This document shows, in pieces, positions 3,553-63,692 of a DNA stretch of 64,000 nucleotides (the first letter of the stretch is position 1; each line of letters begins with the position of its first letter). The stretch lies in sequence record LR756501.1; one strand, written 5' to 3'. The notes under the pieces were generated by a model that did no database searches, had not been told where the DNA came from, and saw only the letters and a list, made by a program, of their open reading frames with translations. The translations under genes were made by a program, and so were the position numbers.

Positions 3553-4266
3553 ATGGATTATATGAAGTCATACAAAGACAAGTTAAATGAGGAAGTCAAT
3601 GATATGGATATTGGTTTTGATTTAACCACTATCTTCAATAAAATACCTGATGATCCTAAAAGTCCAGAGGTACAACGTCTTATTGAAATAGCCAAAAAAG
3701 GTAATCTCTATAAATATATCACTACCGGTGAAAGGAAACTCACCTTTGGTATGTTAAAAGCCTTACATGAAGACGCTTTGGCGTTCAAGAAAAAAAGAGA
3801 ATTAACACAAGGTGTAGAAAAAGCCTTATGGAGAATAGTTCCACTTATTCTTGCACCAATTTTCTTACCTATATGGGCAATATCATTCTTACTTGGTGGT
3901 GCTAGAGCTTTAAATAAGGTTATGGTTCAAGTTTCAAAAATGAATAATAGAACATACGATGGTTTCTTACATAATATTATAAATAAAACAATGGACCTAA
4001 CGGAAGGTGAGATTACAAGATTAACTAGTGATGACTGGTTCTATAAATCTTTTGCTATAGAAAAAGGTCTTATTAATATGGTAAGAAAAGAACACATTAT
4101 AGATTTTAGTTTTTATATAGTTAAGAAGATACAATATCAAGATGACTTAGCAATTGTGCCACCATATTTCGTTGAGAATGAATTTAGAAGATGGTTGAAT
4201 AAGAAATTTAGGTTTGAACCCCCATTACCGTTAAAGAAGAAGCCAAATAGGCACGAAAAATTCTGA
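3553..4266 (+). CDS. Hypothetical protein, CTS-like N-terminus, one hydrophobic segment
   Basis: MKSYKDKLNEE; TAATATATAG just upstream. Confidence 0.7.
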   Translation: MDYMKSYKDKLNEEVNDMDIGFDLTTIFNKIPDDPKSPEVQRLIEIAKKGNLYKYITTGERKLTFGMLKALHEDALAFKKKRELTQGVEKALWRIVPLILAPIFLPIWAISFLLGGARALNKVMVQVSKMNNRTYDGFLHNIINKTMDLTEGEITRLTSDDWFYKSFAIEKGLINMVRKEHIIDFSFYIVKKIQYQDDLAIVPPYFVENEFRRWLNKKFRFEPPLPLKKKPNRHEKF

Positions 4267-4305
4267 CGTACAGAGGCTACTTTAATATATAAAGATAAAA
4301 GCCAT

Positions 4306-4726
4306 ATGGGACTAGCACATTTTACAAACATTCACACAGCAAACTGTTATATTGAACCAATATACAAAGCTCTTGCTGAAGCAGAATTTTACGAAGAGAA
4401 TAAAATCAATCCAATTCCTTTATTCACAGAACAAATTTATAAGATAAATGATAATAAAATTTATTTCAATCTTAATTGGGACATTAAAGATAAATAAAGA
4501 GATTATACCACCTTTGGATAAAATTGTAGAATTAATAAAAAATGAAACACCATTAACCGTAAATGTTTCATTTCACGATAGAGAAGGTGTTATAATGTAT
4601 AAAACTAAAATGGAGAAATTCAAATTCACTAAAATTCTGAATGATTTAGATTTCGATTATAATCAAAAAGATTTCAAAGATTTAGTGGTAGAATATACCT
4701 ATGAAAGAAAGGAGATTTTAGTATGA
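4306..4726 (+). pseudogene. Tail-tube (gp19)-like paralog split by a +1 frameshift at about 4492-4497
   Basis: ORF 4306..4497 (MGLAHF...) and ORF 4448..4726 (...FHDREG...) together match neighbour 4723..5073 (MSPLAHF...FYDREG); removing one A in GAT AAA TAA joins them into 139 aa. Confidence 0.5.
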
Positions 4727-5073
4727 GCCCACTAGCACATTTTCCGGGAGGACCAAGATATTGGGGTGATGCCCAGATATACTTAAATCCAATAGTTTTA
4801 TGTTTCGATAATAAAGAATGCGATAAATTATTGAAAATTGAAATACCAAATCCAATAGATAAAAAAACTTCATCAATTAAAGCGTCTTTTAAAGAAGATG
4901 ACGAAATGAGAAATACTCTTTTAAAAGAAAATCCAAAGGATTTAAGAATAGAATTCTATGATAGAGAAGGTAAAACTATAAGAATCATTTACATGCGAGA
5001 ATGTAAATGTGTTGAAATGCCTAATAACGAGGTTGAAATTCAATTAGAATCTTGGGAAGATAAATATTTTTAA
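4723..5073 (+). CDS. Divergent tail-tube (gp19)-like protein
   Basis: IEFYDREGKTIRIIYMREC resembles the YxRxG...hxhxGxxP strand pair of T4 gp19-like tubes. Confidence 0.4.
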   Translation: MSPLAHFPGGPRYWGDAQIYLNPIVLCFDNKECDKLLKIEIPNPIDKKTSSIKASFKEDDEMRNTLLKENPKDLRIEFYDREGKTIRIIYMRECKCVEMPNNEVEIQLESWEDKYF

Positions 5074-5351
5074 TCTAAAGTTAAATCTCTAACGTCATCT
5101 TCGACTTGATCGTAAAAATCTGGATATTCGTCTTCTATAATAGATAGAATTTCGTCTGCTTTATCCATTCTATAATCTAAGTCGTCACTTCCAAGTAATT
5201 TATCTAATTTCTTGTCTATACTCTTGTTTTTCAGAAGTTTAAAGAATCTGATTATATTACCGTCGTATTCTATTTCACCTGACCATTTTTCTTCACCGTA
5301 AGGGTCTAGTTCGCTTTTATCTGCGTTTTCGTTAAATTTCTTTATTTTCAT
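5070..5351 (-). CDS. Hypothetical protein with CTS-like N-terminus and DPYGEExW motif
   Basis: MKIKKFNEN...ELDPYGEEKW. Confidence 0.75.
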   Translation of the reverse strand: MKIKKFNENADKSELDPYGEEKWSGEIEYDGNIIRFFKLLKNKSIDKKLDKLLGSDDLDYRMDKADEILSIIEDEYPDFYDQVEDDVRDLTLD

Positions 5352-5791: not shown

Positions 5792-5820
5792 AATTTGATT
5801 TTTATTTTATATATTAAAAT

Positions 5821-6411
5821 TTATTTATAACTTCCTCCACCTACCCATAGTACTAAACTTCTTCTACACCCTTTAGTTATTGGAGTAACTCTATGTAACA
5901 AGAAACTTGGAAAAAATATTCCACAACCTTTTATTTTTGGTAAAGTCTTAAAATCACCACCTGTCCATATATCAAAATTACCTCCTTCGTATTCAGATGA
6001 ATCAGATAATTGAATAGTAACACTTATCTTTCTATGATTTATAGGATAGGGTCCAATATCCATATGCCAATCGTAATGTCCACCACCCTCATAATATTCA
6101 GTATATTGAATAGAATCTACAATAGAATGTAAATTATAACCGTAACTCTTATTAGCCTCAATGAACAGATCTTTTAATCTTTCATATACCCAATAAGATT
6201 TATCGTCGTAATGAATCCATTTAATCTTAGATTTCCTAATAGGTTCAACCTCTTCAACTGGCGATCCAACAGTTGTGGCTGTTTGAAATGGGTATAATTC
6301 TTTTAAATTATTAATCCACATCAACTGCTCTTCGTTAAATACTTCATTGATAGCCACAAAACTTGTTTGGTCTATAGCGTTATCAAATTCAAATACAGGT
6401 CTAAAATCCAT
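5821..6411 (-). CDS. 2OG-Fe(II) dioxygenase (prolyl-4-hydroxylase-like)
   Basis: YDWHMD (HxD), EYEGG, LLHRVTPITKGCRRSLVLW (distal His and 2OG-binding Arg). Confidence 0.92.
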   Translation of the reverse strand: MDFRPVFEFDNAIDQTSFVAINEVFNEEQLMWINNLKELYPFQTATTVGSPVEEVEPIRKSKIKWIHYDDKSYWVYERLKDLFIEANKSYGYNLHSIVDSIQYTEYYEGGGHYDWHMDIGPYPINHRKISVTIQLSDSSEYEGGNFDIWTGGDFKTLPKIKGCGIFFPSFLLHRVTPITKGCRRSLVLWVGGGSYK

Positions 6412-9400
6412 TATTTAATCTTACTTTTTAATTCTTGTAACTCACTTAACCAAATAGATTCCTCACTGGTCTGTTCCAACTTCTTTAACTTCTCTCTCAA
6501 TTTATCGTATTCTTCCTTCAACTCCTGCAACCTATCTTTTGTGAAAGACATAATAGACATATTCAAAAGATAACCATATGATTCTTCTACTCTTTCAAGT
6601 TTATGTTTTTCTAAATCCTGCTCAACCAGATCTCTACTTCGCTTGTTAATTATGACTTCACCGTCTATAACCAACTTTAAAAATTTCATTCTATTTTGAT
6701 GTATTCTTATATCCTTTTTTAACTCCTCTAGTTGATAATTTTTTCTCTTCGTGTAATATTCTAATCTCACTTTATAGAAATCATCTATTATATTATATTG
6801 ATCAGTATATTTTTTAATTTTACATTCTTCATCAAAAAGATGCATGTTCTTTGTAGATAAATAAGTCTCCAAACTCAACTTCTTATAAACATTACCGTCA
6901 CCAAGTAATTCTTCCATTTGTTCTTTAGTAAGTATAATCTTTATATCTATAACCTGATCAGTACAATTCTTTACATAATCCTTTATTATCTTATCTTCAA
7001 TTAACTTATCTAACTTCTTAAAATACTCATCGTTCCACATTCCAATAGGAAGCTCAGTCACTCTAATCACATTAGCATTTGGCTTATCATATATACCTCT
7101 TGTTATATATCTTCCACCTTCTTCGTCTCTTATTATCTCACCCTTAAATCCTTTATAATATGGTAAAACTTCTTTTGTTTTCTTACCCTGTATTTTATTA
7201 GCTAAATATGAAATTATCTCTAAAGGATTATACATAGGTACATTACTAGAATATCCAGTTCCTAAACCAAAAGCACCATTCACTAAAACCATTGGTATAA
7301 TAGGAACGTAATATTTTGGCTCAATTGGAGCACCGTCGTCATCTAAATAATCAAGTACATCATTATCTTCTTTCCTAAAAATATAACCACTTATATCACT
7401 TAACTTTGTGAAAATATATCTTGGTGAAGCACTATCTTGTCCACCCTTTATTCTTGATCCAAATTGTCCCTTTGGTGATAATAAATTTATATTGTTTGTA
7501 CCTACAAAAGTCTGTGCCATTCCAACAATGGCTTCTTCGAGTGAAGTGTTGCCGTGATGATAAGCAGCAGACTCAATTACCGCACCAGAAAGTGAACTAA
7601 CTTTTATTTCATTCCTAATGTTCTTCTTAACAAGAGTATAGAAGGCCTTTCTCTGACTTGGTTTAAATCCATCTATTGAGTTCTGTATTTGTCTTACATT
7701 ACTATACATTGAATACTCAATATACTCATTATTAATGAACTTATCATAAGTCTGTTTCACACTAAACTTATCAATAAAATCCACAGGAGCATAAGTCTTT
7801 AACCATTCTTTTCTATCGTCTGCTCTCTTATCATTAAACAACATATCAAGAAGATCCTTAGTCTCAGGCTTATCGTAATGAAACCTAATAAGATGCTTAC
7901 TTATCTTCTTGAAAAACTCTTTCATTTCATCTGGTTGTATAGTGCCCAAACCTTTGTAATACTTTATAAACCAGTCTTTTGTATTAGTTTCAGATTTCCA
8001 TTTCTTGTAATCACCCAGTCTGTAAAAGTACTTATATACTTTACCTTTTTCAATTCTAACAATAGGTGTAATGAATTCGTAAATGAAATCAAGGTGAAGA
8101 AGTTCAGGCCAGAACGTATCAAAAATATTCATAAGTAATCCTTTGATATGTTTACCATCAGCGTCTTCGTCAGACATAAGAACAACTTTACCGTATCTAA
8201 GTTTCTTAGTATCAGTATATTTTTTACCAAATTCAAGACCTAGGATATTAATGATATTTTTAAGTTCGTCATTTTTACCTATGTCTGCCATTGAGGCTCT
8301 TCTAACATTTAGTCCAGATCCTTTTAATGGAAATATACCAAAATAATCAGAATCAACTTCTGAAAGACCAGCAACACAGGATGAAGCTGCAGAGTCACCT
8401 TCTGTTAAGAATAATAAACATTTTTCACTTTCGTTAGTGCCAGCTTTAGCTGCGTCGTCGAGTTTACCTATTTTAACTTTTGATTTGGCTATATCTTTCT
8501 TAGCGTCAAAATCTTCTTTAATCATCAGAAAACGAATTAGTTCGTCAATCATTGCTGATCCAGCGATCTTTTTAATTAGATTATCAGATACTTCTGGAGC
8601 AGTTACTTTACTTATTAAGTTCTCTTTAGATTGTGTGTCGAATAATGGATTAACAACTTTACAATTAACAAATATAAATAAGTGATTTTTAATATCATTT
8701 TGTTTTATATTAAGTTTCTTATTCTTCTTTAATAGGGTTTCAGCAACTTTTTTTGTAATTTGATTACTCACAGAGTTAACGTGGGTACCACCGTTATAAG
8801 TAGATATACCATTAACCATAGATACTTGGTTGAATGAATTATCAAGGGATCTTGATACACCAATTTCCCATTTATCGTCAAGTTTTTCGTAGAATGATTC
8901 TTGTTCACCAACGAACATTTCCATATAGGATTTGAAATTCTTTGTGGGTATATGTATGTTATTGTAATACACTTTAACTTTACTACAATACACGGAAACG
9001 TCTATACAACGTTTTACGATGATTGATTCGATCTCTTCATCTATACCATCTAATTCAAAACGTGCAAAATCAGGATAAAAGGTTATTTTAGTATATTGTT
9101 TCTTTGACGCCTTTATTTTAGGTTTGCCAATTTTATTCATATTGTTTTCGAACTCTTGATGATAATGTTTCTTACCGTCACAAGTTTCTAATATGAATTT
9201 TTTAGAAAAGATATTTGTTAATTTGGCACCAAGTCCGTTTTTTCCACCCCACACTCTATCTATTGTATCGTCAAAATTTTCTCCTGCAAGAAGATGTCCA
9301 AAGATAAGTTCGGGTATATAACATTTTTCTTTTGAGTGCATCTCAACAGGAATACCTGTGCCGTCGTTCTCAATTGATATTGAATCCTTTGTAACATTAA

Positions 9401-9659
9401 CTTTAATATATTTAACGTCACCACTACGTATAGAGTGGTCGGACGCGTTAGTAAGAATTTCGTCAAAAAGTTTTAGAAAGCCTGGATTGAAGTTGATAGG
9501 TTTATTAACTATTTTAATATTGTTTAAGTCCTTTGGATCTTCAACAACGAAGATATTTCTAGTTTCTGTAATGGTTGATCCGACGTATGTATCTGGCCTT
9601 AGAAGGACGTGTTCTTTATGAGTTAATTTTTGATATTTTTCCGAATTAGTTTTAACCAT
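6411..9659 (-). CDS. top2: Type IIA DNA topoisomerase, single polypeptide, eukaryote/NCLDV-like
   Basis: EHVLLRPDTYVGS, EILTNASD, GGKNGLGAKL, TEGDSA, PLKG, DEDADG, KYYKGLGT, DGFKPSQRK, YHHG, ASPRY active-site Tyr; 1082 aa. Confidence 0.97.
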   Translation of the reverse strand: MVKTNSEKYQKLTHKEHVLLRPDTYVGSTITETRNIFVVEDPKDLNNIKIVNKPINFNPGFLKLFDEILTNASDHSIRSGDVKYIKVNVTKDSISIENDGTGIPVEMHSKEKCYIPELIFGHLLAGENFDDTIDRVWGGKNGLGAKLTNIFSKKFILETCDGKKHYHQEFENNMNKIGKPKIKASKKQYTKITFYPDFARFELDGIDEEIESIIVKRCIDVSVYCSKVKVYYNNIHIPTKNFKSYMEMFVGEQESFYEKLDDKWEIGVSRSLDNSFNQVSMVNGISTYNGGTHVNSVSNQITKKVAETLLKKNKKLNIKQNDIKNHLFIFVNCKVVNPLFDTQSKENLISKVTAPEVSDNLIKKIAGSAMIDELIRFLMIKEDFDAKKDIAKSKVKIGKLDDAAKAGTNESEKCLLFLTEGDSAASSCVAGLSEVDSDYFGIFPLKGSGLNVRRASMADIGKNDELKNIINILGLEFGKKYTDTKKLRYGKVVLMSDEDADGKHIKGLLMNIFDTFWPELLHLDFIYEFITPIVRIEKGKVYKYFYRLGDYKKWKSETNTKDWFIKYYKGLGTIQPDEMKEFFKKISKHLIRFHYDKPETKDLLDMLFNDKRADDRKEWLKTYAPVDFIDKFSVKQTYDKFINNEYIEYSMYSNVRQIQNSIDGFKPSQRKAFYTLVKKNIRNEIKVSSLSGAVIESAAYHHGNTSLEEAIVGMAQTFVGTNNINLLSPKGQFGSRIKGGQDSASPRYIFTKLSDISGYIFRKEDNDVLDYLDDDGAPIEPKYYVPIIPMVLVNGAFGLGTGYSSNVPMYNPLEIISYLANKIQGKKTKEVLPYYKGFKGEIIRDEEGGRYITRGIYDKPNANVIRVTELPIGMWNDEYFKKLDKLIEDKIIKDYVKNCTDQVIDIKIILTKEQMEELLGDGNVYKKLSLETYLSTKNMHLFDEECKIKKYTDQYNIIDDFYKVRLEYYTKRKNYQLEELKKDIRIHQNRMKFLKLVIDGEVIINKRSRDLVEQDLEKHKLERVEESYGYLLNMSIMSFTKDRLQELKEEYDKLREKLKKLEQTSEESIWLSELQELKSKIK

Positions 9660-9737
9660 TGATATTAGTTTAGTTTTTCTTATATATAACTTCGACTGGG
9701 TTTTGTTTTTTATAAAAAAATTTTAATATATAGGAGT

Positions 9738-10719: not shown

Positions 10720-11559
10720 GTGAAGAATTATAAACAATTCGTAAACGAATATTACACATGGGATGATGATGTTACTGAAAAAACAATAGATCTTGGTGTT
10801 CTCTATGAACAACAAGAGGGAAACTCTGATCACATATTGCAAATTTTACAATATGAATTTAGACCAATACAATCAAATGATGAATATAAAGTTATCAATT
10901 TAGTCGGTAAGTATAGTAAAGTTAATTTAACATTGGATAATCGTGCGCAATATCCCGGAGGTATAGAAATGGATGAAAAAGGACTCCTATTCTCATCAAG
11001 ATTAAGAGACAGATTAACATTCAGACGTTTAACATTTGATCTTTTTCCCAGATTTCTTTTTAAAATTAAAATATTAAAAAGAAGATTTATCCCTGAAGAT
11101 CCATATGGAGAAGAAGAATGGGATATAAATGAATCCTATTATCCAGATTTATCACCATATAATTATAGTTGGGAGATGCCTGAGTGTGTTAATATTGGTT
11201 GGCTAGATGATAAACACGATTTTGAAAAAGGCGAAGTTCCTGAAGGTTTTGTAGATAAGTTGGTAAAAATGCCAAGGTTTGTACAACATTGTGGTTATCA
11301 CAATTGTCCATTCTGTGAAGGCGGAAGAGATACATGGAGCAGTAGTATTAAATTGGCTATAGGAGACGGTGTAGTTTACCTTTTCCCAGAATTGACGAAG
11401 CACTATATATCTAAACATCATTATAAACCACCACAAGAATTTATTGACGCTGTATTAAAAATGGAAAATATGTCTGATGGTGATGCCCATAGATACATGA
11501 ATAATATCATGTTAAGACATAAGGAACATTTTGATAAAATGTTCCATAGAAAGAGATAG
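10720..11559 (+). CDS. Two-module protein: unknown N-domain, DPYGEEEW linker, paralog of 10269..10706
   Basis: VNIGWLD...GEVPEGF...HCGYHNCPFC...HYISKHHYKPPQEFIDAV shared with the upstream gene. Confidence 0.75.
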   Translation: MKNYKQFVNEYYTWDDDVTEKTIDLGVLYEQQEGNSDHILQILQYEFRPIQSNDEYKVINLVGKYSKVNLTLDNRAQYPGGIEMDEKGLLFSSRLRDRLTFRRLTFDLFPRFLFKIKILKRRFIPEDPYGEEEWDINESYYPDLSPYNYSWEMPECVNIGWLDDKHDFEKGEVPEGFVDKLVKMPRFVQHCGYHNCPFCEGGRDTWSSSIKLAIGDGVVYLFPELTKHYISKHHYKPPQEFIDAVLKMENMSDGDAHRYMNNIMLRHKEHFDKMFHRKR

Positions 11560-14202: not shown

Positions 14203-14228
14203 GTTCAAAAATATTTATATATAGTGGC

Positions 14229-14930: not shown

Positions 14931-15776
14931 ATGAAAGTTAAGAAACTACAAGAATATAACACTAAAAGAATAATGGTCTTTAGTGGCTCAGCTAGATGTA
15001 TGGACAATTGTCCTGGTCAAGATGGTAAGACTAATTATATTGTAGAACAAGCAATTAAAGACTTACCAAAAGACATAGAAATTGATCTGGTTGATCTTTC
15101 AGTTGAAACTGATAAACCTATTATTCAACCTTGTAAGGGCTGTATATCAACCGCTGGTGGTGCTCACTGCCATTTTCCATGTGATTGTTACTTTAAAAAG
15201 AATAAAGATTATCCAGATTTAATGCACGATTTTGATATTTACAAAAGACTTTTAAAAGCTGACGCTTTCATAGTATTTACTCCTATTAATTGGTGGAGTG
15301 TACCTACACAAGTTAAAGCAATGTTTGATAGATTAGTATGTGGTTCTCTTACCATTACAGATAAACAAGCACAAGAACTTTGGCCCGATGACGTTAAGAA
15401 TCCTAAAAAGACAAAACCATTTTCAGACACAGAAAAATACAAAGAGATGGTAAAGAATCATTATGAAGGAAAGGTTGGAGCATTTTATGTTCACGGAGAT
15501 GACGGAGCGGATGATTACAAGAACAGAGAAATGCCAGACTCTTATAAGAAATATGAAATAGGTAAATTTGACGAACCTATAAATACTATTAAACCTATTA
15601 TCTGGCAATGTAGATATATGGGAATAGATGTACCTGATGAATTGGTTGAGGCTTTTTATATGAATGAAGATATAAGTTATAGTGACGCTAATGATAAGTT
15701 AAAGGAAGGTAAGTTGAATTTTGCTGTGAAGAAGGCTAGGAAATTAATTTTAGATACTTTTGATTATATAAAATAA
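14931..15776 (+). CDS. Iron-sulfur flavoprotein / NADPH-dependent FMN reductase family
   Basis: VFSGSAR, PCKGCIS...CHFPCDC, ADAFIVFTPINWWSVPTQVKAMFDRL. Confidence 0.9.
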   Translation: MKVKKLQEYNTKRIMVFSGSARCMDNCPGQDGKTNYIVEQAIKDLPKDIEIDLVDLSVETDKPIIQPCKGCISTAGGAHCHFPCDCYFKKNKDYPDLMHDFDIYKRLLKADAFIVFTPINWWSVPTQVKAMFDRLVCGSLTITDKQAQELWPDDVKNPKKTKPFSDTEKYKEMVKNHYEGKVGAFYVHGDDGADDYKNREMPDSYKKYEIGKFDEPINTIKPIIWQCRYMGIDVPDELVEAFYMNEDISYSDANDKLKEGKLNFAVKKARKLILDTFDYIK

Positions 15777-15787
15777 TATATAGTGAT

Positions 15788-16360
15788 ATGTTAACGAAAT
15801 TTGAATTATTTTTGGAAGGTAAATGGTTTGGAGGCGGTAGAGCAGCAAAGGCTGGCCCTAATGCTCCAGTTGTTGTTCCTAATCAAGAGCAAGCAAAGAA
15901 AAAAGTTTACGATAAACCAGATGATGATATAATAGAATGGATGATTAACTATCTTAAAAAGACTGGTGTTGATGAGACAAAATTAACTGATGATTATAAT
16001 TTATCTCCAAAAACTTTTGAACCTAAACAATGGTGGGAATATAAATTTATAAAACAAGGAAAGACTAATCCATTGGATCCTTACGGTGAAGAAGATTGGC
16101 CAGGAGCTACTGGTAATAAACAGATTAATATAAGAATAGAAAAGAGATCTCTACTTGGTGACAAATATGAATATTATTATAGGTTCAAAGTTAATGATAA
16201 TGATTTAGATGTATCTGAAAAATATATTAAAAGAATAGTAGAATTACTTGACGCCCCAAAAGAAGCAAGAAGGTTGGCGAGAGAAAAAAGGGAGGCTGAA
16301 GCTAAGAAATCCAAGAATGACGCAATAAGAAGAGATTTATTTGAAAAAAGATCGAAATAA
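15788..16360 (+). CDS. Hypothetical protein with CTS-like N-terminus and DPYGEEDW
   Basis: MLTKFELFLEG...LDPYGEEDW; TAATATATAG at 15774-15783. Confidence 0.75.
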   Translation: MLTKFELFLEGKWFGGGRAAKAGPNAPVVVPNQEQAKKKVYDKPDDDIIEWMINYLKKTGVDETKLTDDYNLSPKTFEPKQWWEYKFIKQGKTNPLDPYGEEDWPGATGNKQINIRIEKRSLLGDKYEYYYRFKVNDNDLDVSEKYIKRIVELLDAPKEARRLAREKREAEAKKSKNDAIRRDLFEKRSK

Positions 16361-16384
16361 TTTTTTTATTCGAACTCGTCGCAG

Positions 16385-16392
16385 TATCTTTG
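16385..16392 (+). promoter_or_regulatory. Bacteroidota-type -7 promoter element TAnnTTTG (representative)
   Basis: Also at 19144, 49915, 52202 (+) and 26776, 28431, 47412, 48131 (-), all intergenic and pointing into the downstream gene or RNA. Confidence 0.7.
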
Positions 16393-16411
16393 TGTTATCA
16401 AATCAAAAACA

Positions 16412-20372: not shown

Positions 20373-20392
20373 CTTTTTTAATATATAATACC

Positions 20393-22112: not shown

Positions 22113-22143
22113 AAAAAGAAAATAAAAATTAATATATAGTGGT

Positions 22144-24374: not shown

Positions 24375-24782
24375 TTATAGTTTATTTTTTAGTTTATTTA
24401 TAATTCTTTCCTGTTCGTCAATTAATCTTTCACGTGCTTTTCTTTCTTCATACATATCAGTTAAAATTTCGTTCACCTTAGCCATAATCTCTGATTTTGT
24501 ATTATAACCATCTGGTGATATATTATATGGTCTGATGGTTTCGGGATAAAGTCCTATAAAATCAAGATATGGATGAATTGTATCTAACTCTTCGTCCCAG
24601 TTTTCCTCACCGTAAGGATCTTCTTTAGATGCATGTCTTTTAAGAGATCTTAAAGCAATTTGTCTAATTTCTTCAGCGTTAGTAATAAAACCAAGTTCTG
24701 GGTCGAACGGACTAACACTATCAACTCCTCTTTTAATTTTGAGGATTTCCATTCTTCTTTCTAATGTTTCTCTTCTGTCCAT
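24375..24782 (-). CDS. Hypothetical protein with internal DPYGEENW
   Basis: SKEDPYGEENWDEE. Confidence 0.75.
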   Translation of the reverse strand: MDRRETLERRMEILKIKRGVDSVSPFDPELGFITNAEEIRQIALRSLKRHASKEDPYGEENWDEELDTIHPYLDFIGLYPETIRPYNISPDGYNTKSEIMAKVNEILTDMYEERKARERLIDEQERIINKLKNKL

Positions 24783-26185: not shown

Positions 26186-26406
26186 TTTTCCCAGTTTTCT
26201 TCCCCGTAAGGGTCTTCTTTTGAAATAACTCTTTTAATTTCTTTCTTTTTTGGTTCTTCTTCTCTTCTACGGTGTTCTCTTTCTCTTTCAAAATCTGCTC
26301 TCTCGAAATCACCACGTCTAAGTTTTTCGAAATAAATATCCACAATCATCCACGTCATATAAAAGACAACAGGAAGAAATAATAATAACCATATCATATC
26401 GTTCAT
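26182..26406 (-). CDS. Small membrane protein with C-terminal DPYGEENW
   Basis: TM helix, charged linker, KRVISKEDPYGEENWEK. Confidence 0.75.
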   Translation of the reverse strand: MNDMIWLLLFLPVVFYMTWMIVDIYFEKLRRGDFERADFEREREHRRREEEPKKKEIKRVISKEDPYGEENWEK

Positions 26407-26754
26407 TTATTTATCCCAATCTTCTTCTCCGTAAGGATCTTCCTTAGTGAATACCCTTTTTATTGATTTAGGAACACTCCACCCGTAAGGATTATCAACA
26501 ACAACATCATTAAAATTTAAAATAACCCTATTATGAGCGTTTCTTTCCCTTTCTCTTTCCATTTTTCTTTCTTTATTATATTCACTAATAGCAGTCCCAA
26601 ATGTAACTACAAGGAATAAAACTATTAAAGACGAAATGAAAATAATACCAGTTAAAGCATAATTATTACCGATAAAGTGAGAAGCAACGAAGAATGGTAT
26701 TAAACCAAACAGTATCACTAATAACTTACCTAGTGTAGTTAGCTTGTTCCACAT
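26407..26754 (-). CDS. Membrane protein with C-terminal DPYGEEDW
   Basis: Two TM helices, KRVFTKEDPYGEEDWDK. Confidence 0.75.
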   Translation of the reverse strand: MWNKLTTLGKLLVILFGLIPFFVASHFIGNNYALTGIIFISSLIVLFLVVTFGTAISEYNKERKMERERERNAHNRVILNFNDVVVDNPYGWSVPKSIKRVFTKEDPYGEEDWDK

Positions 26755-26808
26755 TTTATATAAATTTTAAGAGAACAAATATATGAATAATTTTTAGAAA
26801 TAAAAAAA

Positions 26809-29615: not shown

Positions 29616-29772
29616 AGCAATTTCTTTTTATGTTTATATATTGAACAAATTAAGTCCAAAACTTACAAAATTAGAATAAAATGAGATTATTTTGTACATT
29701 TTTAATACACAGTGAAATTATATACTGTTTTAGAATTAAAAAAATTGTTTTTTTAGTTTAATATATAGGGTT

Positions 29773-33041: not shown

Positions 33042-33485
33042 TTACATATGAACATTTCCACTAAATGACTTGTAAGAGAACACATTTTTCTTTTCTTTTG
33101 GTGGTGGTTCAATCAATCCCTTTTTAATTTTTAATTCTATTTCTGCTTTTTCTCTATCTTCTTTTGTTCTTCTATACATAAATTCATCAATTTCGTAAAG
33201 ACAATCCCTGAGACATGTAACTTTCTTTTCAATGATGATAGGATTAAATGGACCACTAACATCTTTTCTTATTCTATATAAGAAATCGTTAGATTTATAT
33301 TTATAAATTGAAATTATATATTTTACTGATGTACATATAGCTTTATTTTTTAAAACTATCTTAAATTTAAAACCCTCATTGTTTTCAAGCGCTGATATCT
33401 CTCTTGGCGTAAAATTTTCCTGTGGTTCTTCCTTTTGTACCTTCATTTCATATATAAAGTTGTTATATTTTTTTATATTATCCAC
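33042..33485 (-). CDS. Hypothetical protein, CTS-like N-terminus
   Basis: MDNIKKYNNFIYE. Confidence 0.65.
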   Translation of the reverse strand: MDNIKKYNNFIYEMKVQKEEPQENFTPREISALENNEGFKFKIVLKNKAICTSVKYIISIYKYKSNDFLYRIRKDVSGPFNPIIIEKKVTCLRDCLYEIDEFMYRRTKEDREKAEIELKIKKGLIEPPPKEKKNVFSYKSFSGNVHM

Positions 33486-37922: not shown

Positions 37923-39623
37923 ATGGCTGATGTTGCTTTAACTAACAGGACATATAATGAAACTATAAAGCGTGCTGATCAATACTGTAAAAGTAAAGAG
38001 TATGACGAAGCATTAAGCCTGTATAAGAAAGCTTACACCCTCAAATCTGATTTAGAATACGCCCCAAAACAAATTGCTAAACTCAATAGAATTTTAGAAT
38101 TAAAATCTAAAATATCAGAGAAGTCTGCTTCCTACTCTTACAACAAGGCAATGCAAATGGCACTTAAAACAGTGCTTAACGCCACATACGGTGCATTTGC
38201 TAACAAATATTTCGTACTTTCTAATTCAAAGATCGCCAACGCCATCACAGCTATGGGCAGAGATCTTATTAGATATATGATTATTTGCTCAGAAGATTAT
38301 TTCTATAATAAATGGCACCTTGATATTGATAAACATTCTTTACTTGGTATGGAATACATCGCCAAAGGTAAAACAGATGGTAAGTATTATTTTCTCAATA
38401 AAGAATACAAGAAAACAGATAGACCTTATTCGTCTTTTAATACAAACGAATTAGGTGATATTCTTTTATCTAGAAAAATTTCAATAGATAGACTAAAGAA
38501 AATAGAAGGAGAAGTTGGTGATTACGAGTTAATGTACGAATACAAAATATTCGACCTAACAGATATTAAACCACTAGACCTAAAACCTAAATGGAAACAC
38601 GATTTAGATAATGGTGTTGATTTCTATGACGGTCCTAATAAAATTAGTATGTACGGAGATACTGATTCCTATTACCTTTCATATAAACCTATTATGGATT
38701 CGGTTGGATATAAAGGCGACGAGCTTGAGTTTATTCTTCACTTTGATAAGATTGTTATGAAGAAGATTCACGGTGAGTTCTTACAGATCTATGCTGATAA
38801 ATACGGTGTTGTTAATAAACAAGACTTTGAGTTGGAAACCATCAGTAAATCAATTCTTTTCTTTGAGAAGAAAAACTATCTCAAAAACGTAGTGTGGGAA
38901 GACGGTATATTTTTTGAACCTTTATCTTACTTCTCACCAACAGGTATTAGAATTGTAAGAAGTGAAACTCCACCATTTGTGCGTGGTAAAGATCAGAAAG
39001 GTGGAGTCTGGGAGTTTATAAAATATTTGTTTATAGACCCCGAGAACTTAAATATCAAGGACATTCTAAAGATTGTAAAACAAATTAGAAAAGAATTTGA
39101 TTTGGAAGAGATTGATAATATATCAAGTCAAGTAGGATGTTCGAATTACAGGGATAAGATTATTAACGATACAACTGGTATTGAAGTGGTGGATCACGCA
39201 CACTACGCTGTAAAGGCTGCAGGTTTCTACAATTACTTATTGAATAAGAACTCTGAATATAAAACAAAATACGATATGATTAGAGGCGGTGGTAGAATAA
39301 AATATTACTACTGTAAACACGACAAACACAACGTGTTTGGATATTTAAGAGGAATGCATCCAACAGAGATAACTGAGAAAGAAGCAGTTATGTTTGATTA
39401 CGACGCACAATTTGATAAGACTGTACTTTCTATTTGTAATAGTTTCTTGAAGGCTTTGGATTTACCGATGATTAATAAGAGAATGTCTATTCTTGGATCG
39501 TTATTTGCTTTCAAATTAAAACAACCTAAAATTGAAGATCCACAAGAGGAAGATGAAGGACCAGTAGTAGGTATGTTATTTGACGCCGATGATTACGTAG
39601 ATGAGGATGATTTATTAGATTAA
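37923..39623 (+). CDS. Family B DNA polymerase, C-terminal subunit of a split enzyme
   Basis: Motif B QMALKTVLNATYG, motif C YGDTDS, KKNY; no exonuclease motifs or motif A. Confidence 0.9.
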   Translation: MADVALTNRTYNETIKRADQYCKSKEYDEALSLYKKAYTLKSDLEYAPKQIAKLNRILELKSKISEKSASYSYNKAMQMALKTVLNATYGAFANKYFVLSNSKIANAITAMGRDLIRYMIICSEDYFYNKWHLDIDKHSLLGMEYIAKGKTDGKYYFLNKEYKKTDRPYSSFNTNELGDILLSRKISIDRLKKIEGEVGDYELMYEYKIFDLTDIKPLDLKPKWKHDLDNGVDFYDGPNKISMYGDTDSYYLSYKPIMDSVGYKGDELEFILHFDKIVMKKIHGEFLQIYADKYGVVNKQDFELETISKSILFFEKKNYLKNVVWEDGIFFEPLSYFSPTGIRIVRSETPPFVRGKDQKGGVWEFIKYLFIDPENLNIKDILKIVKQIRKEFDLEEIDNISSQVGCSNYRDKIINDTTGIEVVDHAHYAVKAAGFYNYLLNKNSEYKTKYDMIRGGGRIKYYYCKHDKHNVFGYLRGMHPTEITEKEAVMFDYDAQFDKTVLSICNSFLKALDLPMINKRMSILGSLFAFKLKQPKIEDPQEEDEGPVVGMLFDADDYVDEDDLLD

Positions 39624-44246: not shown

Positions 44247-44933
44247 ATGGCACAATCAAATAAACATTTACCAAAAATGATAAGTAATTTCAATGAGTTT
44301 GAAGGCGAAATCATTAAATATTCTGATTACGTTGGTGAAACACTAGACGCAAGTTTAAATCAATTAAACGAAGTTCCTCAAAAAACATGGACTGTTGAAG
44401 ATAGCCAACAACTATCCTCACAATTAGTTGGTGTTAAACACCCCTGGACAAGAGACCAATACGAAAAATTCGCTCATCCAGACGTTAAAAAAGATATAAA
44501 CTACGAAGCTTATATAGCTATGTGGAACACACATGCCCCAGAAGATCAAAGAGTTATTCTCGAGAAATCACCAGCCAGAGGGTTTAATGTTGATAGAAGA
44601 CCTAAAAATGAAACACAGAAACCAACCCCAAAACAAAAAAGAGAAGCTGGTAAAACAAATCCATATGGGAGTTATCCTGTGAGTTATGGCACAGGTGGTT
44701 ATGGTACAAGTGGTGGTTCAGGTGTAATCGATGATTTTGAAAAGAAATATCCAGCTCCTGCTTCTTATCCATATACTTATGAAAAATCAAATAAAGAAAT
44801 AGAAAAAGTGAAAGATAGTTCTGAAACATCAACGTGGAGTAAAATTAAAATCGAAACACGTATAATGATAGTAACAATGATTATAGGTGTTATATTATCT
44901 TTTATAACAGTTTTAATTTTAATGCTTAAATAA
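44247..44933 (+). CDS. Hypothetical protein with C-terminal TM anchor
   Basis: STWSKIKIETRIMIVTMIIGVILSF tail. Confidence 0.7.
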   Translation: MAQSNKHLPKMISNFNEFEGEIIKYSDYVGETLDASLNQLNEVPQKTWTVEDSQQLSSQLVGVKHPWTRDQYEKFAHPDVKKDINYEAYIAMWNTHAPEDQRVILEKSPARGFNVDRRPKNETQKPTPKQKREAGKTNPYGSYPVSYGTGGYGTSGGSGVIDDFEKKYPAPASYPYTYEKSNKEIEKVKDSSETSTWSKIKIETRIMIVTMIIGVILSFITVLILMLK

Positions 44934-45165: not shown

Positions 45166-45362
45166 ACTTAAATGAATTAGATCCTTACGGGGAAGAAAAT
45201 TGGTCTGATGAATTACGTCAAGAACCAGATTATAAAGGAATATGTCTTCACCTTGAAGAGTGGGAAAAGAAAGGAATTCCTCATAGTTTATCAGATATGA
45301 TATATTTAGCCAATAAATATAATATTCCCGTTCCAGTTAAAAAAGTAATTAGATATATATGA
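45162..45362 (+). CDS. Small protein with N-terminal DPYGEENW
   Basis: MNLNELDPYGEENW. Confidence 0.7.
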   Translation: MNLNELDPYGEENWSDELRQEPDYKGICLHLEEWEKKGIPHSLSDMIYLANKYNIPVPVKKVIRYI

Positions 45363-47444: not shown

Positions 47445-47663
47445 TTATTCGTTATCAATTTCCTCTACTTCACCGTAAGCTTCATTTACATATTCCATTG
47501 CTTCATCAAATGATTTGAATTCATCGACGTAGTCCCAATCAGTAACGTAGGCTTCTCCACCTTCAAATGGATCGTGCCACACAGTATATGCTTTCTTACC
47601 GTTCTCTTGTATTGATACCCCTTGTTCGGAGTTATTTACCAGTTTATAAATCCAAATCTTCAT
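47445..47663 (-). CDS. Small acidic hypothetical protein
   Basis: ATGA overlap with the YqeY-like gene. Confidence 0.65.
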   Translation of the reverse strand: MKIWIYKLVNNSEQGVSIQENGKKAYTVWHDPFEGGEAYVTDWDYVDEFKSFDEAMEYVNEAYGEVEEIDNE

Positions 47664-48106
47664 GATAACATATTTTTAACAAGTCCACCAACCATTTTCA
47701 TATCAGCCTTACCAAGTAATTCCTTATTAGCAATAGCCATCACTTTACCCATATCACGCACTGATGTAGCACCAACTTGAGCGATGAAATCTTTTACTCT
47801 GAAAGTAACTTCATCTTCTGAAAGTTGTTCGGGTAAATAAGTTTTGTAAACAGTAGCGTTGAACATTTCTTTATCAACCAAGTCAATTCTTCCACCCTGC
47901 GCGTACTGCACAGCGGATTCAGTGCTTTGACTAACTAATTTCTGAATAATTTTAGTAACTTCAGCGTCAGTAAGTTCGTCCTTACCTTCTTTAGCCTTTT
48001 CTACTTGAATAGCAGATTTAATAAGACGAATAGCGTCAAGGGTTTCCTGACGTTTTTCAAGCATTGTTCTCTTGATTTCTAAATCAATAATTTGTTCCAG
48101 TTTCAT
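47660..48106 (-). CDS. GatB/YqeY domain protein
   Basis: IRLIKSAI, QYAQGGRIDL, YLPEQLSEDE, DMGKVM, GKADMK. Confidence 0.92.
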   Translation of the reverse strand: MKLEQIIDLEIKRTMLEKRQETLDAIRLIKSAIQVEKAKEGKDELTDAEVTKIIQKLVSQSTESAVQYAQGGRIDLVDKEMFNATVYKTYLPEQLSEDEVTFRVKDFIAQVGATSVRDMGKVMAIANKELLGKADMKMVGGLVKNMLS

Positions 48107-48161
48107 TTACGTGTGTATTAAAGTACATTACAAATATACGAACATTTAATGAATAAAAAAA

Positions 48162-49820: not shown

Positions 49821-49938
49821 AGTTATACGTTTATTTTCTTGTATTTATATATAAATCAAGCTAAAGTTTAAATTAATTTATTTTCAGATATTATTTTCTT
49901 AACAAAATTTTTTGTATATTTGTAAAAATTAATGCAAA

Positions 49939-51026: not shown

Positions 51027-51572
51027 GTGAAAAGATACAAAGAACTAAAGTTCGAAGACAAAACATATACTGAAGCTTATAAGATTGATGAAATCCTCGT
51101 CAAGAATAAGTTTGAATGGTTCCTTGATTGTGAGGTAGAAAACGCCAGAATAGAAATTCTTAAAAACACTTTAGTGTTCAACTCAGGTGTATTCTTCAAT
51201 GGTACATGGGTTTACGGTGTTTTCAGAGACGGTCAGTGGAAATATGGAACATGGGAAGGTGGTGTTTGGTATAATGGAACTTGGTACAACGGTATCTTTA
51301 AAAACGGTATCATCTTCGGTGGTAGATTTATTGCAGGTAAAATAGAAGGCGGTGAAATTAGAGGCGGTGAAATATTTGACGTTCAAATTAGTCAAGACGT
51401 CGTAAACAATACCATATCTAAAATGGAACAACCAAAGAAAGCACAAAAAGGAGAACCCCAAAATAGGGGAGTACAACAAAAAGAACCTCAAGCAGAATTA
51501 CCACAGGTAATACAACCTGAAAAAATAGAAGAATCTCACAGAATTAAAAGATTTAACGAATATGCAGGATAA
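51027..51572 (+). CDS. Protein with Gx(W/F)xx pentapeptide repeats (beta-helix-like)
   Basis: SGVFFNGTWVYGVFRDGQWKYGTWEGGVWYNGTWYNGIFKNG. Confidence 0.75.
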   Translation: MKRYKELKFEDKTYTEAYKIDEILVKNKFEWFLDCEVENARIEILKNTLVFNSGVFFNGTWVYGVFRDGQWKYGTWEGGVWYNGTWYNGIFKNGIIFGGRFIAGKIEGGEIRGGEIFDVQISQDVVNNTISKMEQPKKAQKGEPQNRGVQQKEPQAELPQVIQPEKIEESHRIKRFNEYAG

Positions 51573-52170: not shown

Positions 52171-52232
52171 AAATTTAATTTTTTATCAGGAAAAATTGTT
52201 GTATCTTTGTACTAATCTAAAAACTAAAATAT

Positions 52233-58389: not shown

Positions 58390-58995
58390 TTAAAAAGTTG
58401 GTGGTGCTTGTGCTCCACCTGCTGCTGGTTGTGGAAAAGCTCCAGCCTGTTGTGCTGGTGGCATTTGTGCTCCTGGAGGAGGAGCCATACCGCCTTCTGG
58501 TGGTGCGCCTCCTGCTGGGGGTGCTCCTTGTGCTGGTTGTTGTGCTTCTTTCTCTTTAGGTACATCTATCTTATTCTCATCTGGATTTTCACTATGATCG
58601 TCATCCATTTTCGAAATCTTTTCTGTAATAAAGTCTTCTTTAATATCGTCTATTTTAACTTGTTTATCGTTTGTTAATTCTATTGTCCAGATTGGTTCAC
58701 CACCGTTAGTTTCGTCTATTTTAGCAGGGTCGTATTTCTTAATAATTACGTCACAATTTTCTAAGTCTTCTATATTAAATCTGATTATCATTTGAAAATA
58801 GAATTCAGCACTGGCAAAATTTGTAATGATTGATCTCTTTGCGGCGTTAGGAGTAGAACTTTTAGATTGATCAACTGGCATAGAGCTTAAAGAAAATGAA
58901 CCTTTCTGAAACCAATATGTGATACGCTCAATTACCTTTTTAATGATTTGGTCCATTTCATAGTCTGCCTGCATGAACTCTTCGAACATTTTCAT
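58390..58995 (-). CDS. Hypothetical protein with CTS-like N-terminus and Pro/Gly/Ala-rich tail
   Basis: MKMFEEF...QGAPPAGGAPPEGGMAPPPGAQMPP. Confidence 0.75.
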   Translation of the reverse strand: MKMFEEFMQADYEMDQIIKKVIERITYWFQKGSFSLSSMPVDQSKSSTPNAAKRSIITNFASAEFYFQMIIRFNIEDLENCDVIIKKYDPAKIDETNGGEPIWTIELTNDKQVKIDDIKEDFITEKISKMDDDHSENPDENKIDVPKEKEAQQPAQGAPPAGGAPPEGGMAPPPGAQMPPAQQAGAFPQPAAGGAQAPPTF

Positions 58996-59045
58996 ATTTT
59001 AACGATTTTATTTTTATATATATATTAAAAGAAATAAACCGAAAA

Positions 59046-61121: not shown

Positions 61122-61897
61122 GGATTACTAAATGGTTCTTGATTCACTGAACCGACCGATCCATTAATTCCACCAGTTCCAAACCCCTGTCCTTGTAGTA
61201 ATGTAGGATCTTTCTTAAAATCTTCGATTATTTTATTCCATTTTCTTTGGTCAAAAATAACTAAATCGTCTGTTACTTTTTGTTCTTCGATTTGTAATTG
61301 TTGTTCTTCTACTTTTTGTTGTTCGTTAATCTCTTTATGTTCGTATTCGTCTCTTAATTCTTTATAAAAAGATTTCATTTTAGTAGATAAATCATTTATC
61401 ATTTTCGAACTATCTCTAATCTCTTTCTGGTAAGCATTTACAGCCACGTGCATTTCGGGGTCGTTTGCACCAGCATCTATTTGTTTCATACAATTTACAA
61501 GTCCTCTTTTAGCACAAGATAACGAGAATTTAATATCACTAATGGTTTCAGCGTCATTTTTAATGATACTCATTACGTTCTTCTTTCTCATTAACGTATC
61601 ATTGAGGTATAAACTGGATAGACACTCTAGGGTTTCTGCGGCGTCTTCTTTTATCATTTCTATATCTTTTTCGTAGTCGTATTTTGAGTATTCAAAATCA
61701 AGACCAGGTAGTAAGTCCTTTGGTGGGATTAGGTCTTGTGGTAATGTATCTATCTCATCTAACATAGAATTTATTTCGTCTTGTAGATTTGATATATTTC
61801 CTAATTTTTTATTTATGTATTCTTTTTCTTCTGATTTATCTGTCCAAACCTTTTCTGTTTTTTCTGTTTTCTTTGGACGACCTCTTTTTCCTGGCAT
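61118..61897 (-). CDS. Hypothetical helical protein with N-terminal AT-hook-like motif
   Basis: MPGKRGRPKK; coiled-coil core. Confidence 0.7.
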   Translation of the reverse strand: MPGKRGRPKKTEKTEKVWTDKSEEKEYINKKLGNISNLQDEINSMLDEIDTLPQDLIPPKDLLPGLDFEYSKYDYEKDIEMIKEDAAETLECLSSLYLNDTLMRKKNVMSIIKNDAETISDIKFSLSCAKRGLVNCMKQIDAGANDPEMHVAVNAYQKEIRDSSKMINDLSTKMKSFYKELRDEYEHKEINEQQKVEEQQLQIEEQKVTDDLVIFDQRKWNKIIEDFKKDPTLLQGQGFGTGGINGSVGSVNQEPFSNP

Positions 61898-61982
61898 AAC
61901 GTATTCTTATTTTTTGAATAAGTATATATAGAAATATAAATTGTAATTTTAATATATAGCATTATATAAAAAAAACCAACCA

Positions 61983-63692
61983 ATGTTTAATATTTTAACC
62001 TTTAAGCAGTTATTCGAAAACGAAGCAAAACCTTTTTACTGGAGACCTGTTCCTTTACCACAAGTATATCCAAGTAGAAATCAAGTAGATGTATGGATAA
62101 ATAATAACGAAGATTTGAAAGATAATATGATTAGATTCATGGCTAAAGATTGGGACTTCAAAACAAATGATTACGAAATAGATCCAATTGAAAAAGTCAT
62201 AGTTGATATGTACGAAGGTGAAGGTTACATATATTTCGTTGACGAAAATTACAAGACATATAAAATAGAAGGCGAAGAAATAGAAGTTAAAGTAAACGGT
62301 GAGAGAAAATTCAATAAAGAAGACCCTTACGGAGAAGAGGTCTGGGAGAATAAAAGATTGAATGAAATCTTTGATTCTAATGTTACTTACGAATATAAAT
62401 TCGTAAAATCTAGAAAAATGGTACAATTTACTGATCTTGTTTATACATTCACATCAAAAGATAATGTCGAATATTTTGTTACTGTATCTTATAATAAAGA
62501 TTTTCACTCAATGAGTGTTAAATTTACAGATAAGGCTAATTTCAAAGGATTAATGAATAAAGTAAAAGATAAATATGTCGATCTTGAAAACTTTGACGCC
62601 ATTAATGTTCTGAATACAGTTGTTAAGATATGTAAAGATTTTTACGATAAGAACATGGATAAAGTTAAAATGTTTACCACTTCTACTTTAGATGAAAAAA
62701 GATTAAGAGTATATAAATACATATTAAGAAAATATTTTAAAGGGTGGGAAGTTGATTCATATGTTGATCCAAGAGGTGATATAGTAATTGAAGCGGAGCC
62801 ACCAAAGGAACAAGTGAATGAAGGTTGGAAATTTCAATTAGGTGAATTAGCTTTATTCTTAACTTATTTATTTAGTAGTATTGGTAGTGATGTTAGTCAT
62901 AAACGTTTTACCCGTGAGTATTTTGATCATTACGCTAAAACAATGAACATTGCTAATAACAATCAAATTGTTCAAATGGTTGTGAAAGATTTTAAAGCCA
63001 AGATTGCTACAGATCCTAAAATAATGAATAAACAAGAAGTTTATAATGTGATAGACAATACTCCTATTGTATTTAGAAAGAATGACGAAGTATGTTATAT
63101 TTTATATAATCAAGCAAGACTTAATAATCCAGGTATAACTCCGAGCTGTTGGTGTACAACAATGTTAAAAGACGGTGAGAAAACTAAAAAGGGCGGTAAG
63201 TCTGTTATATTTTTAGCTCAAAACGCTTCTTATAGTGATATTTTACACGAGTTATCACACGCCATTGAAACAGTAGTTGAAGTAGATCCTAAGATTTTAG
63301 ATATGTTCAATTTCAATTATACTTTTAAACAACAGGGACTTTTATATATGATGCTTACTAATTTTGAATACGAATTGAAAACTCCTGTTAACGCATCTAC
63401 GATAACATATTTAAAAAATCCAAGTGAAGTTTATTCAAGGTTGAACAATCTTAAAATGTTTTTATTTAAGAATGGTAAACTAAGATCTGTCGGTCAGGAA
63501 ATATCAGAAGATCTCTTGTATAGTTTAATAACTGGACAAGTTTATAAGTCTTTAAATGAAAAGGCAAAGGAAGAATATAGAAAATCTGATTTTATGGAAA
63601 TATTAATGTTTATAAGTGTAAAGAAAAGTAGAAAGATAAATCAATACGTTCAAAACGTATCACAATCAAGATTAAAAAATAATATGGCGTAA
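61983..63692 (+). CDS. Putative multi-module polyprotein (CTS-like start, DPYGEEVW, xNE junctions, HExxH)
   Basis: MFNILTFKQLFEN...EDPYGEEVWENKRLNE|IFD...EQVNE|GWK...ILHELSHAIE...EVYSRL. Confidence 0.75.
   Translation: MFNILTFKQLFENEAKPFYWRPVPLPQVYPSRNQVDVWINNNEDLKDNMIRFMAKDWDFKTNDYEIDPIEKVIVDMYEGEGYIYFVDENYKTYKIEGEEIEVKVNGERKFNKEDPYGEEVWENKRLNEIFDSNVTYEYKFVKSRKMVQFTDLVYTFTSKDNVEYFVTVSYNKDFHSMSVKFTDKANFKGLMNKVKDKYVDLENFDAINVLNTVVKICKDFYDKNMDKVKMFTTSTLDEKRLRVYKYILRKYFKGWEVDSYVDPRGDIVIEAEPPKEQVNEGWKFQLGELALFLTYLFSSIGSDVSHKRFTREYFDHYAKTMNIANNNQIVQMVVKDFKAKIATDPKIMNKQEVYNVIDNTPIVFRKNDEVCYILYNQARLNNPGITPSCWCTTMLKDGEKTKKGGKSVIFLAQNASYSDILHELSHAIETVVEVDPKILDMFNFNYTFKQQGLLYMMLTNFEYELKTPVNASTITYLKNPSEVYSRLNNLKMFLFKNGKLRSVGQEISEDLLYSLITGQVYKSLNEKAKEEYRKSDFMEILMFISVKKSRKINQYVQNVSQSRLKNNMA

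Follow-up and report, generated by a model that had tools for sequence, protein, structure and literature searches.

Recurrence of an N-terminal motif resembling the T4 capsid-targeting sequence in the proteome of a 735-kb phage

The final 64 kb of the record LR756501.1 (positions 671412-735411 of the 735,411 bp of an 'uncultured phage', free of N and hereafter called the window) raise the question of why many proteins with unrelated folds begin with the same short peptide pattern, here named the tag, which resembles the capsid-targeting sequence (CTS) of the internal proteins of phage T4. The source is the 735-kb genome of Al-Shayeb et al. 2020, which belongs to the Mahaphage clade and has Bacteroidetes as the predicted host (PMC7162821); it was the largest known phage genome of that study. 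The analyses described here suggest that the tags are probably genuine T4-type capsid-targeting, cleavable propeptides, greatly expanded in number, a reading to which a probability of about 0.6 can be assigned.

The record carries no annotation, and 974 open reading frames (ORFs), covering 92% of the sequence, were called on the whole of LR756501.1, which has a G+C content of 32%. An unanchored expectation-maximisation motif search on N-terminal 25-mers was of little use, returning a diffuse K-K-hydrophobic pattern in about 80% of the proteins; since this pattern was too diffuse, a weight matrix anchored on the aromatic pair of the N-termini was adopted, and a protein was called tagged at >=10 bits unless stated otherwise. 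The matrix consensus is [ILMV]-K-[KN]-[FY]-x-x-[FY]-[ILE]-[NK]-E, and its two aromatic columns are the most informative ones (2.9 and 3.0 bits). Genome-wide, N-termini are enriched in F at residues 5 and 8 and in E at residues 9-14. Within the first 16 residues i,i+3 is the sole enriched aromatic spacing, occurring in 26.6% of the proteins versus 15.3% of internal windows, and the same pair followed by Glu is found in 13.1% of N-termini versus 3.6% of internal windows. In 87 proteins, against an expected 12, residue 5 is the first aromatic, with lesser peaks at residues 4 and 7; in the tags it falls within residues 4-7. About 90% of the motif-matching proteins have I, L, V or M three positions ahead of this aromatic.

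With the self-trained matrix 149 of 965 proteins reached >=10 bits, while the internal-window rate predicts 1.7, and two-fold cross-validation retained 96; the tagged share of the proteome is 10-15%, i.e., one protein in seven to ten. Shuffling of residues 2-20 within each protein left 3.8 +/- 1.8 matches. In the window, whose ORFs were scored with a matrix trained solely on N-termini outside it, 18 ORFs reached at least 10 bits (0.2 expected), 21 at least 8 and 25 at least 6. Both the window and the genome counts far exceed their expected values, and the existence of the tag is thus confirmed. The initial annotation, made from the sequence alone, had put the number of tagged proteins at 25-30, a range that is attained only when weak matches are admitted; some of the examples that it quoted, namely those of the MIKKFNEN type, MPLTFQKFFEE and the ORF at 61983, score below 6 bits, as their second aromatic is missing or displaced. 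Three proteins had been singled out as possible cargo: the radical SAM protein is indeed tagged (12 bits), and so is the ORF at 52908 (13.6 bits), although its description as SatD-like is unsupported, with no Pfam match; the flavoprotein at 14931-15776 scores below 6 bits and is not convincingly tagged, its FMN_red domain beginning at residue 13, after a weak 12-residue extension.

The tag is confined to N-termini. Similar motifs had also been reported near C-termini; however, genome-wide only 21 matches of >=12 bits lie elsewhere than at the N-terminus, versus 8.8 in shuffled sequences, and just three of them are C-terminal, so that internal and C-terminal copies are at or near chance; some of the 21 matches reflect mis-called starts. 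At the conserved F, Y, E and N positions the choice among synonymous codons does not differ from the genome average, and F can replace Y or the reverse, which points to the peptide rather than the mRNA as the target of selection.

The CTS of the T4 proteins IPI, IPII and IPIII was described by Mullaney and Black 1996 (as reviewed in PMC9026906 and PMC5694885). Like the present tag, it is N-terminal, 10-20 residues long and follows the pattern K-aromatic-x-x-aromatic-aliphatic-x-Glu. When the phage-trained matrix was run on 130 of the 169 kb of T4, it gave 19.8 bits to ipII, 17.5 to ipIII and 9.0 to ipI; the only other strong hit was gp61.1, which with 23.0 bits was the top one in the scanned part. 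T4 gene 61.1 (NC_000866 18966-19130) codes for a 54-aa hypothetical protein with a near-perfect CTS at its start, which suggests that gp61.1 may be an unrecognised head-internal protein. Amber-suppressor mutagenesis of the IPIII CTS assigned targeting mainly to residues 4 and 7, and processing to residues 8 and 10 (PMC9026906); in the tag their counterparts are the aromatic pair, the aliphatic residue and the Glu, respectively. A hydrophobic-x-E site is found directly behind the aromatic pair in 105 of 147 tags. At the predicted cleavage site P3 is L or I in 73% of the cases, P2 is usually Asn (47%), unlike the Ala of T4, and P1' is Ala in 20%, five times the background, with Ser, Glu and Gly making up most of the rest; Ala, Ser and Gly are enriched at this position. 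Predicted propeptides measure 9-19 residues, with a median of 11; T4 propeptides have 10-20 (PMC5694885).

As in T4, the tag is accompanied by a protease of the gp21 type and a shell protein of the gp23 type; tagged genes are probably also expressed late, to judge from a promoter-like box. Three head genes, for portal, protease-scaffold and capsid, are located at 72-78 kb of the genome, in T4 order; the portal (gp20) and the TerL genes were identified by BLASTP to T4, and the capsid protein belongs to the Gp23 family (PF07068, 83 bits). The protease is contained in an ORF of 807 aa (LR756501.1 73913-76336), the first 250 residues of which match the head maturation protease (phrog_207, E 5e-27). 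Unlike in T4, the scaffold is fused to the protease and displays the motif of the tag as tandem repeats: residues ~305-485 of the same ORF comprise 12 units of 14 residues, x-L-D-K-S-I-x-Y-S-E-Y-I-A-E, and Tandem Repeats Finder reported a matching 42-nt period in the gene. In spacing and chemistry the core of the unit, YSEYIAE, agrees with the tag core, and two substitutions separate it from the T4 YQEFIAE; each unit ends with I-A-E, the type of site cut by T4 gp21. T4 gp22, in turn, starts with a CTS-like LIAE-A and holds several IAE sites. The tag may be described as a predicted amphipathic helix of 9-19 residues, whose core is patterned like the 14-residue scaffold unit, and the hydrophobic spacing of the repeats appears compatible with a coiled coil. 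Arrays of 11-14 units are conserved in 13 IMG/VR relatives, the most divergent of which has 52% identity, and the repeats are also present in the 636-kb and 642-kb Mahaphages (LR756502 and LR756504); co-variation of tag and scaffold across phages was uninformative, the repeat core being nearly invariant. No published description of such protease-scaffold repeats was found. A second, stand-alone gp21-like protease (LR756501.1 11314-11850, 178 aa) is 45% identical to the fused one and ends in the sequence DPYGEExW, considered below.

A TATATATA box precedes tagged genes as well as the portal, protease, capsid and terminase genes. In particular, a box [AT]ATATATA lies 27-30 nt before the genes for the portal, the protease-scaffold, the capsid, three terminase fragments and topoisomerase II, and it is absent before those for primase, helicase, UvsX, DNA polymerase, clamp loader, gp46 and UvsW, while the ligase gene has a host-type TAnnTTTG element instead. 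Among genes with an upstream gap of >=40 nt, the box is found in 41 of 51 tagged and in 117 of 314 untagged ones (odds ratio 6.9, p 1e-8). The statement of the initial annotation that most tagged genes follow the promoter holds, for T[AT]ATATATA within 45 nt, in 10 of the 18 strong window ORFs, most of the others being directly downstream in the same units; in the whole genome, 86 of the 149 tagged genes are without a nearby box. Tagged genes are clustered, forming 55 adjacent pairs against 22.7 expected, and a 22-member family just upstream of the portal gene includes 13 tagged members. The shared box, the clustering and the position of this family make it likely that tagged and head genes are co-expressed late. 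In a short-leader class of genes the T[AT]ATATATA box ends 5 nt ahead of the start codon; in 24 genes it starts exactly at -13, and 56% of these short-leader genes are tagged (the boxes of this class in the window are marked in Table 1); such an arrangement would imply leaderless or nearly leaderless late mRNAs. A palindromic TATATATATA run between two divergent tagged genes looks like a candidate bidirectional late promoter. A second promoter class, similar to the Bacteroidetes -7 element TAnnTTTG (e.g., TATCTTTG and TATATTTG), was observed before untagged genes and likely represents host-type early promoters. Topoisomerase II (window 6411-9659, minus strand), with its box 29 nt upstream, is one fused protein of 1082 aa, which in T4 is split as gp39, gp52 and gp60.

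About 85% of the tagged proteins are without a Pfam match; the remaining ones span unrelated folds, including class I Glu/Gln-tRNA synthetase, PPK2, CoaE, polyA/CCA polymerase and DeoC, together with methyltransferases, radical SAM, GNAT, deaminase, HD, DHH and TonB_C. Complete Pfam domains begin right behind the tag, at residue 27 in the Glu-tRNA synthetase (GluRS), 14 in CoaE, 35 in DHH and 14 in DUF7919, suggesting that the tag is an add-on; in the DUF7919 protein of 145 aa encoded in the window, profile position 2 aligns to residue 14, and the tag is thus outside the domain. After removal of residues 1-22, paralogs at E<=1e-5 were found for merely 36 of the 149 tagged proteins and none for the other 113, which argues that the tag is not a family domain. 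A PHROGs search with nine tagged proteins returned nothing informative, apart from one weak partial match to an antiterminator-Q-like family. Tagged proteins reach 1233 aa, and 5% of them contain membrane-like segments, versus 13% of the others.

Orthologs on related contigs retain the motif while its letters drift, even where the region cannot be aligned: the homologs of the 232-aa window protein are each tagged, with an unalignable tag region, and an ortholog of the 171-aa protein that opens a three-gene tagged run differs in sequence and keeps the motif. On IMG/VR contigs from many metagenomes (608 kb) 131 of 782 ORFs are tagged, while 100-kb samples of LR756504 and LR756502 gave 7 of 104 and 10 of 124, respectively; T4 in the same comparison gave 6 of 184, two of which are true internal proteins and the rest score 10-12 bits. 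The IMG/VR and Mahaphage counts indicate that the tag is a clade trait, most expanded in the 735-kb lineage. The literature searched contained no description of such tags in huge phages.

From these similarities we infer that the tagged proteins bind the scaffold, are cleaved, are present in the virion and are injected. In the proposed mechanism, they would be made late and would dock on the scaffolding core of the prohead by mimicking one scaffold unit, to be then enclosed by the gp23-like shell; the gp21-like protease would cut after the Glu of [LI]-x-E, dismantling the scaffold repeats and freeing the cargo inside the head, and the freed cargo would presumably be ejected together with the DNA. 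A tag that equals a single scaffold unit would be expected to co-assemble with the core and to be cut by the same protease. A cargo of this kind is physically possible, since one copy of every tagged protein sums to 3.9 MDa, while giant phage heads reportedly hold >40 MDa of ejection proteins (PMC7411985) and T4 packs 20-200 copies of CTS fusions (PMC9026906). A broader proposal can be advanced only tentatively, with odds below even: one scaffold-mimic tag would load >100 proteins, corresponding to 10-15% of the proteome and including Glu/Gln-tRNA synthetase, CCA/polyA polymerase, PPK2, CoaE, radical SAM enzymes and methyltransferases, into the prohead, to be injected as a starter proteome, and the T4 CTS would be the lone surviving unit of an ancestral repeat scaffold.

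Judged by its sequence the tag is a CTS of the T4 type, and the phage encodes the protease, scaffold and shell protein to go with it; new are its scale, the enzymes among the presumed cargo and a scaffold made of repeats. T4 has from three to a handful of internal proteins, which are small, basic and directed against host defences, while here they would be 96-149 and would include metabolic and translation enzymes. Heads of phiKZ-type giant phages contain >50 proteins, with tens of MDa of ejected protein (PMC5694885, PMC7411985). In phiKZ, 201phi2-1 and SPN3US too, N-terminal propeptides load head-internal proteins and a T4-related prohead protease cuts after Glu; however, their propeptides are mostly >100 residues long and without a shared short consensus, the processed proteins are ~8-19 and not >100, and no scaffold of tag-like repeats has been described. 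A functional likeness only can be seen with encapsulins, which are not viruses, where a short terminal peptide suffices to load unrelated enzymes into an HK97-fold shell; encapsulin cargo-loading peptides mostly sit at the C-terminus, contact the shell protein itself and stay uncleaved.

A second motif, DPYGEExW, was found in 109 copies in 94 proteins; all 109 share DPYGEE without change and 103 also have the W, with variation at synonymous sites. By position, 41 copies are only a few residues away from the C-terminus, 22 directly follow the N-terminal tag and the other 46 are internal; a single protein can have as many as four, and module junctions are a frequent site. Tag and DPYGEExW tend to be found in the same proteins (odds ratio 4.2, p 8e-9), and ~200 proteins bear one or both of them; the enrichment in late boxes was not seen for proteins with DPYGEExW alone. 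DPYGEExW is abundant in related viral contigs and absent from the 100-kb samples of LR756502 and LR756504; it occurs at chance level only in 596 Gb of cellular genomes, and DPYGEE in phages is not mentioned in the literature searched. The motif is specific to the present phage lineage. It could represent a second docking or processing signal, the latter because Y-G-E also fits the hydrophobic-x-E pattern.

The likeness to the T4 CTS put forward by the initial annotation finds strong in silico support in the scores of the T4 ip proteins, the positions identified by mutagenesis, the head module and the promoter class. Several points weigh against the interpretation of the tags as cleavable targeting propeptides. 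The phage is uncultured and known here from its sequence alone; 42 of 147 tags are without a hydrophobic-x-E site; the match of the 807-aa ORF to PF03420 (24 bits) is below the Pfam cut-off of 27; the late-type box is not exclusive to virion genes, since topoisomerase II also has it; the pI of tagged proteins is the same as that of the rest, while T4 internal proteins are basic; and some of the hits are natural N-termini, as in SbcC-like and RNaseH-like proteins. To our knowledge, 100-150 cargo species would far exceed those of any studied phage; moreover, the tagged GluRS or GlnRS, CCA or polyA polymerase, PPK2 and CoaE have ordinary cytoplasmic roles, and we know of no precedent for their packaging.

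Other explanations of the tag have to be considered. In an AT-rich genome K, N, F, Y, I and E are common, and more than half of the genes with a box at -13 are tagged, so the pattern might be an artefact of composition or of selection on the mRNA near start codons, e.g., in leaderless transcripts; this explanation was rejected and is scarcely credible, because the permutation, spacing and codon tests are all contrary to it, N-termini losing nearly all matches when permuted, i,i+3 alone being enriched and F and Y interchanging among genome-like codons, and because most tagged genes are without a nearby box. An N-terminal domain shared within one or a few paralogous families would account for a minority of the tagged proteins, as exemplified by the family near the portal gene and by the clustering of tagged genes; for most of them this explanation was rejected as very improbable, given that 113 of 149 have no paralog beyond the first 22 residues and that the tag occurs on unrelated Pfam folds.

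The tag might instead be a coiled-coil-like docking helix for another late assembly, such as a cytoplasmic factory or hub, its T4 likeness being due to a shared structural principle only. The enzymes in the tagged set would be useful in the cytoplasm, the number of proteins with tag and/or DPYGEExW suggests a general sorting system, and those with DPYGEExW alone are unlinked to the late box; however, the prohead protease-scaffold fusion is the only protein found with matching repeats, L or I at P3, Glu at P1 and Ala, Ser or Gly at P1' would be purposeless under pure docking, and the matrix picks out the T4 internal proteins specifically, so that this alternative is considered unlikely. Finally, the presence of [LI]-x-E sites in most tags and of a second gp21-like protease would also agree with a cleavable pro-sequence, whereby late proteins would become active only once it is removed by the phage protease or the stand-alone paralog, with no packaging involved. 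This is improbable, as T4 residues 4 and 7 serve targeting and not inhibition, no part of the tag is better conserved than the aromatic pair, which a cleavage site does not need, and the mimicry of the scaffold repeat would be unexplained.

The interpretation of the tags as capsid-targeting propeptides bears on why phages of 0.5-0.7 Mb carry so many genes, including translation and metabolic ones. If it is true, and 10-15% of the proteins are delivered with the DNA, infection would start with working enzymes, with no wait for their expression, and the reading of huge-phage gene content would change. It would also offer a concrete molecular idea of how the T4 CTS may act, with the tag as one scaffold repeat unit, and a simple sequence rule to predict head cargo in uncultured T4-related phages.

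The features identified in the window are collected in Table 1.

Table 1. Tagged ORFs, promoter-like elements and copies of DPYGEExW in the window (window coordinates; SL, box of the short-leader class).
Feature	Coordinates	Strand	Details
Tagged ORF, 237 aa	3553..4266	+	14.0 bits; late box 3539-3547 (SL); no Pfam or PHROG match; two tagged orthologs
Tagged ORF, 147 aa	5348..5791	-	14.5 bits; late box 5808-5816
Tagged ORF, 171 aa	9738..10253	+	12.5 bits; late box 9724-9732 (SL); opens three-gene tagged run
Tagged ORF, 145 aa	10269..10706	+	12.8 bits; tag, then DUF7919
Tagged ORF, 279 aa, GTG start	10720..11559	+	20.3 bits; tag, unknown module, DPYGEExW, DUF7919 (residues 140-246)
Tagged ORF, 232 aa	14229..14927	+	20.6 bits; late box 14215-14223 (SL)
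Tagged ORF, 190 aa	15788..16360	+	15.6 bits; late box 15774-15782 (SL); internal DPYGEExW
Tagged ORF, 168 aa	22144..22650	+	15.3 bits; late box 22130-22138 (SL)
Tagged radical SAM protein, 346 aa	26809..27849	-	12.0 bits; Radical_SAM from residue 72; two tagged orthologs
Tagged ORF, 335 aa	29773..30780	+	14.4 bits; late box 29759-29767 (SL); three tagged orthologs
Tagged ORF, 147 aa, GTG start	33042..33485	-	12.6 bits; late box 33491-33499 (SL); three tagged orthologs
Tagged ORF, 218 aa	44277..44933	+	12.0 bits; from second ATG of ORF 44247-44933, start choice uncertain
Tagged ORF, 181 aa, GTG start	51027..51572	+	12.2 bits; 8.6 bits in another scoring; weaker, atypical tag
Tagged ORF, 235 aa	52908..53615	+	13.6 bits; no Pfam family at E<=0.01
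Tagged ORF, 186 aa	57812..58372	-	16.6 bits; downstream of 58390-58995 in one unit
Tagged ORF, 201 aa	58390..58995	-	16.6 bits; shares palindromic box 59015-59026
Tagged ORF, 84 aa	59046..59300	+	14.4 bits; tag, copy of capsid protein N-terminal arm, basic tail
Tagged ORF, 209 aa	60492..61121	+	13.6 bits; two tagged orthologs
Weakly tagged ORF, 125 aa	20393..20770	+	6.4 bits; late box 20379-20387, 13 nt before ATG
Weakly tagged ORF, 76 aa	44935..45165	+	8.9 bits
Late-type box TAATATATA	3539..3547	+	ends 5 nt before ATG (SL)
Palindromic TATATATATA box	59015..59026	.	between two divergent tagged genes
TAnnTTTG-like elements	~16370-16410, 26755-26800, 47660-48150, 49900-49938, 52190-52232
DPYGEExW	5283..5306	-	in ORF 5070-5351
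DPYGEExW	11098..11121	+	at module junction
DPYGEExW	16076..16099	+	internal
DPYGEExW	24597..24620	-	internal
DPYGEExW	26191..26214	-	2 residues before stop
DPYGEExW	26416..26439	-	2 residues before stop
DPYGEExW	45180..45203	+	near N-terminus
DPYGEExW	62322..62345	+	internal, 569-aa ORF

Parts of the major capsid protein, namely its N-terminal arm and its residues 140-219 and 365-517, recur as copies in small ORFs. One such ORF is the tagged one of 84 aa in the window, which shares 41% identity with residues 32-81 of the capsid protein (E 4e-10, BLASTP), and others are located at genome positions 497197, 542326 and 552409; several end in DPYGEExW or bear a tag. Small ORFs at 552-556 kb, adjoining capsid-copy ORFs, resemble sheath fragments. 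The large terminase is split into three T4 gp17-like pieces, all of them behind a late box, at window 28443-29615 (minus strand), which contains the N-terminal ATPase part only, and at genome 609226-611493 and 623865-624410. The family B DNA polymerase is fragmented as well, with pieces at window 37923-39623 and genome 90179-91693.

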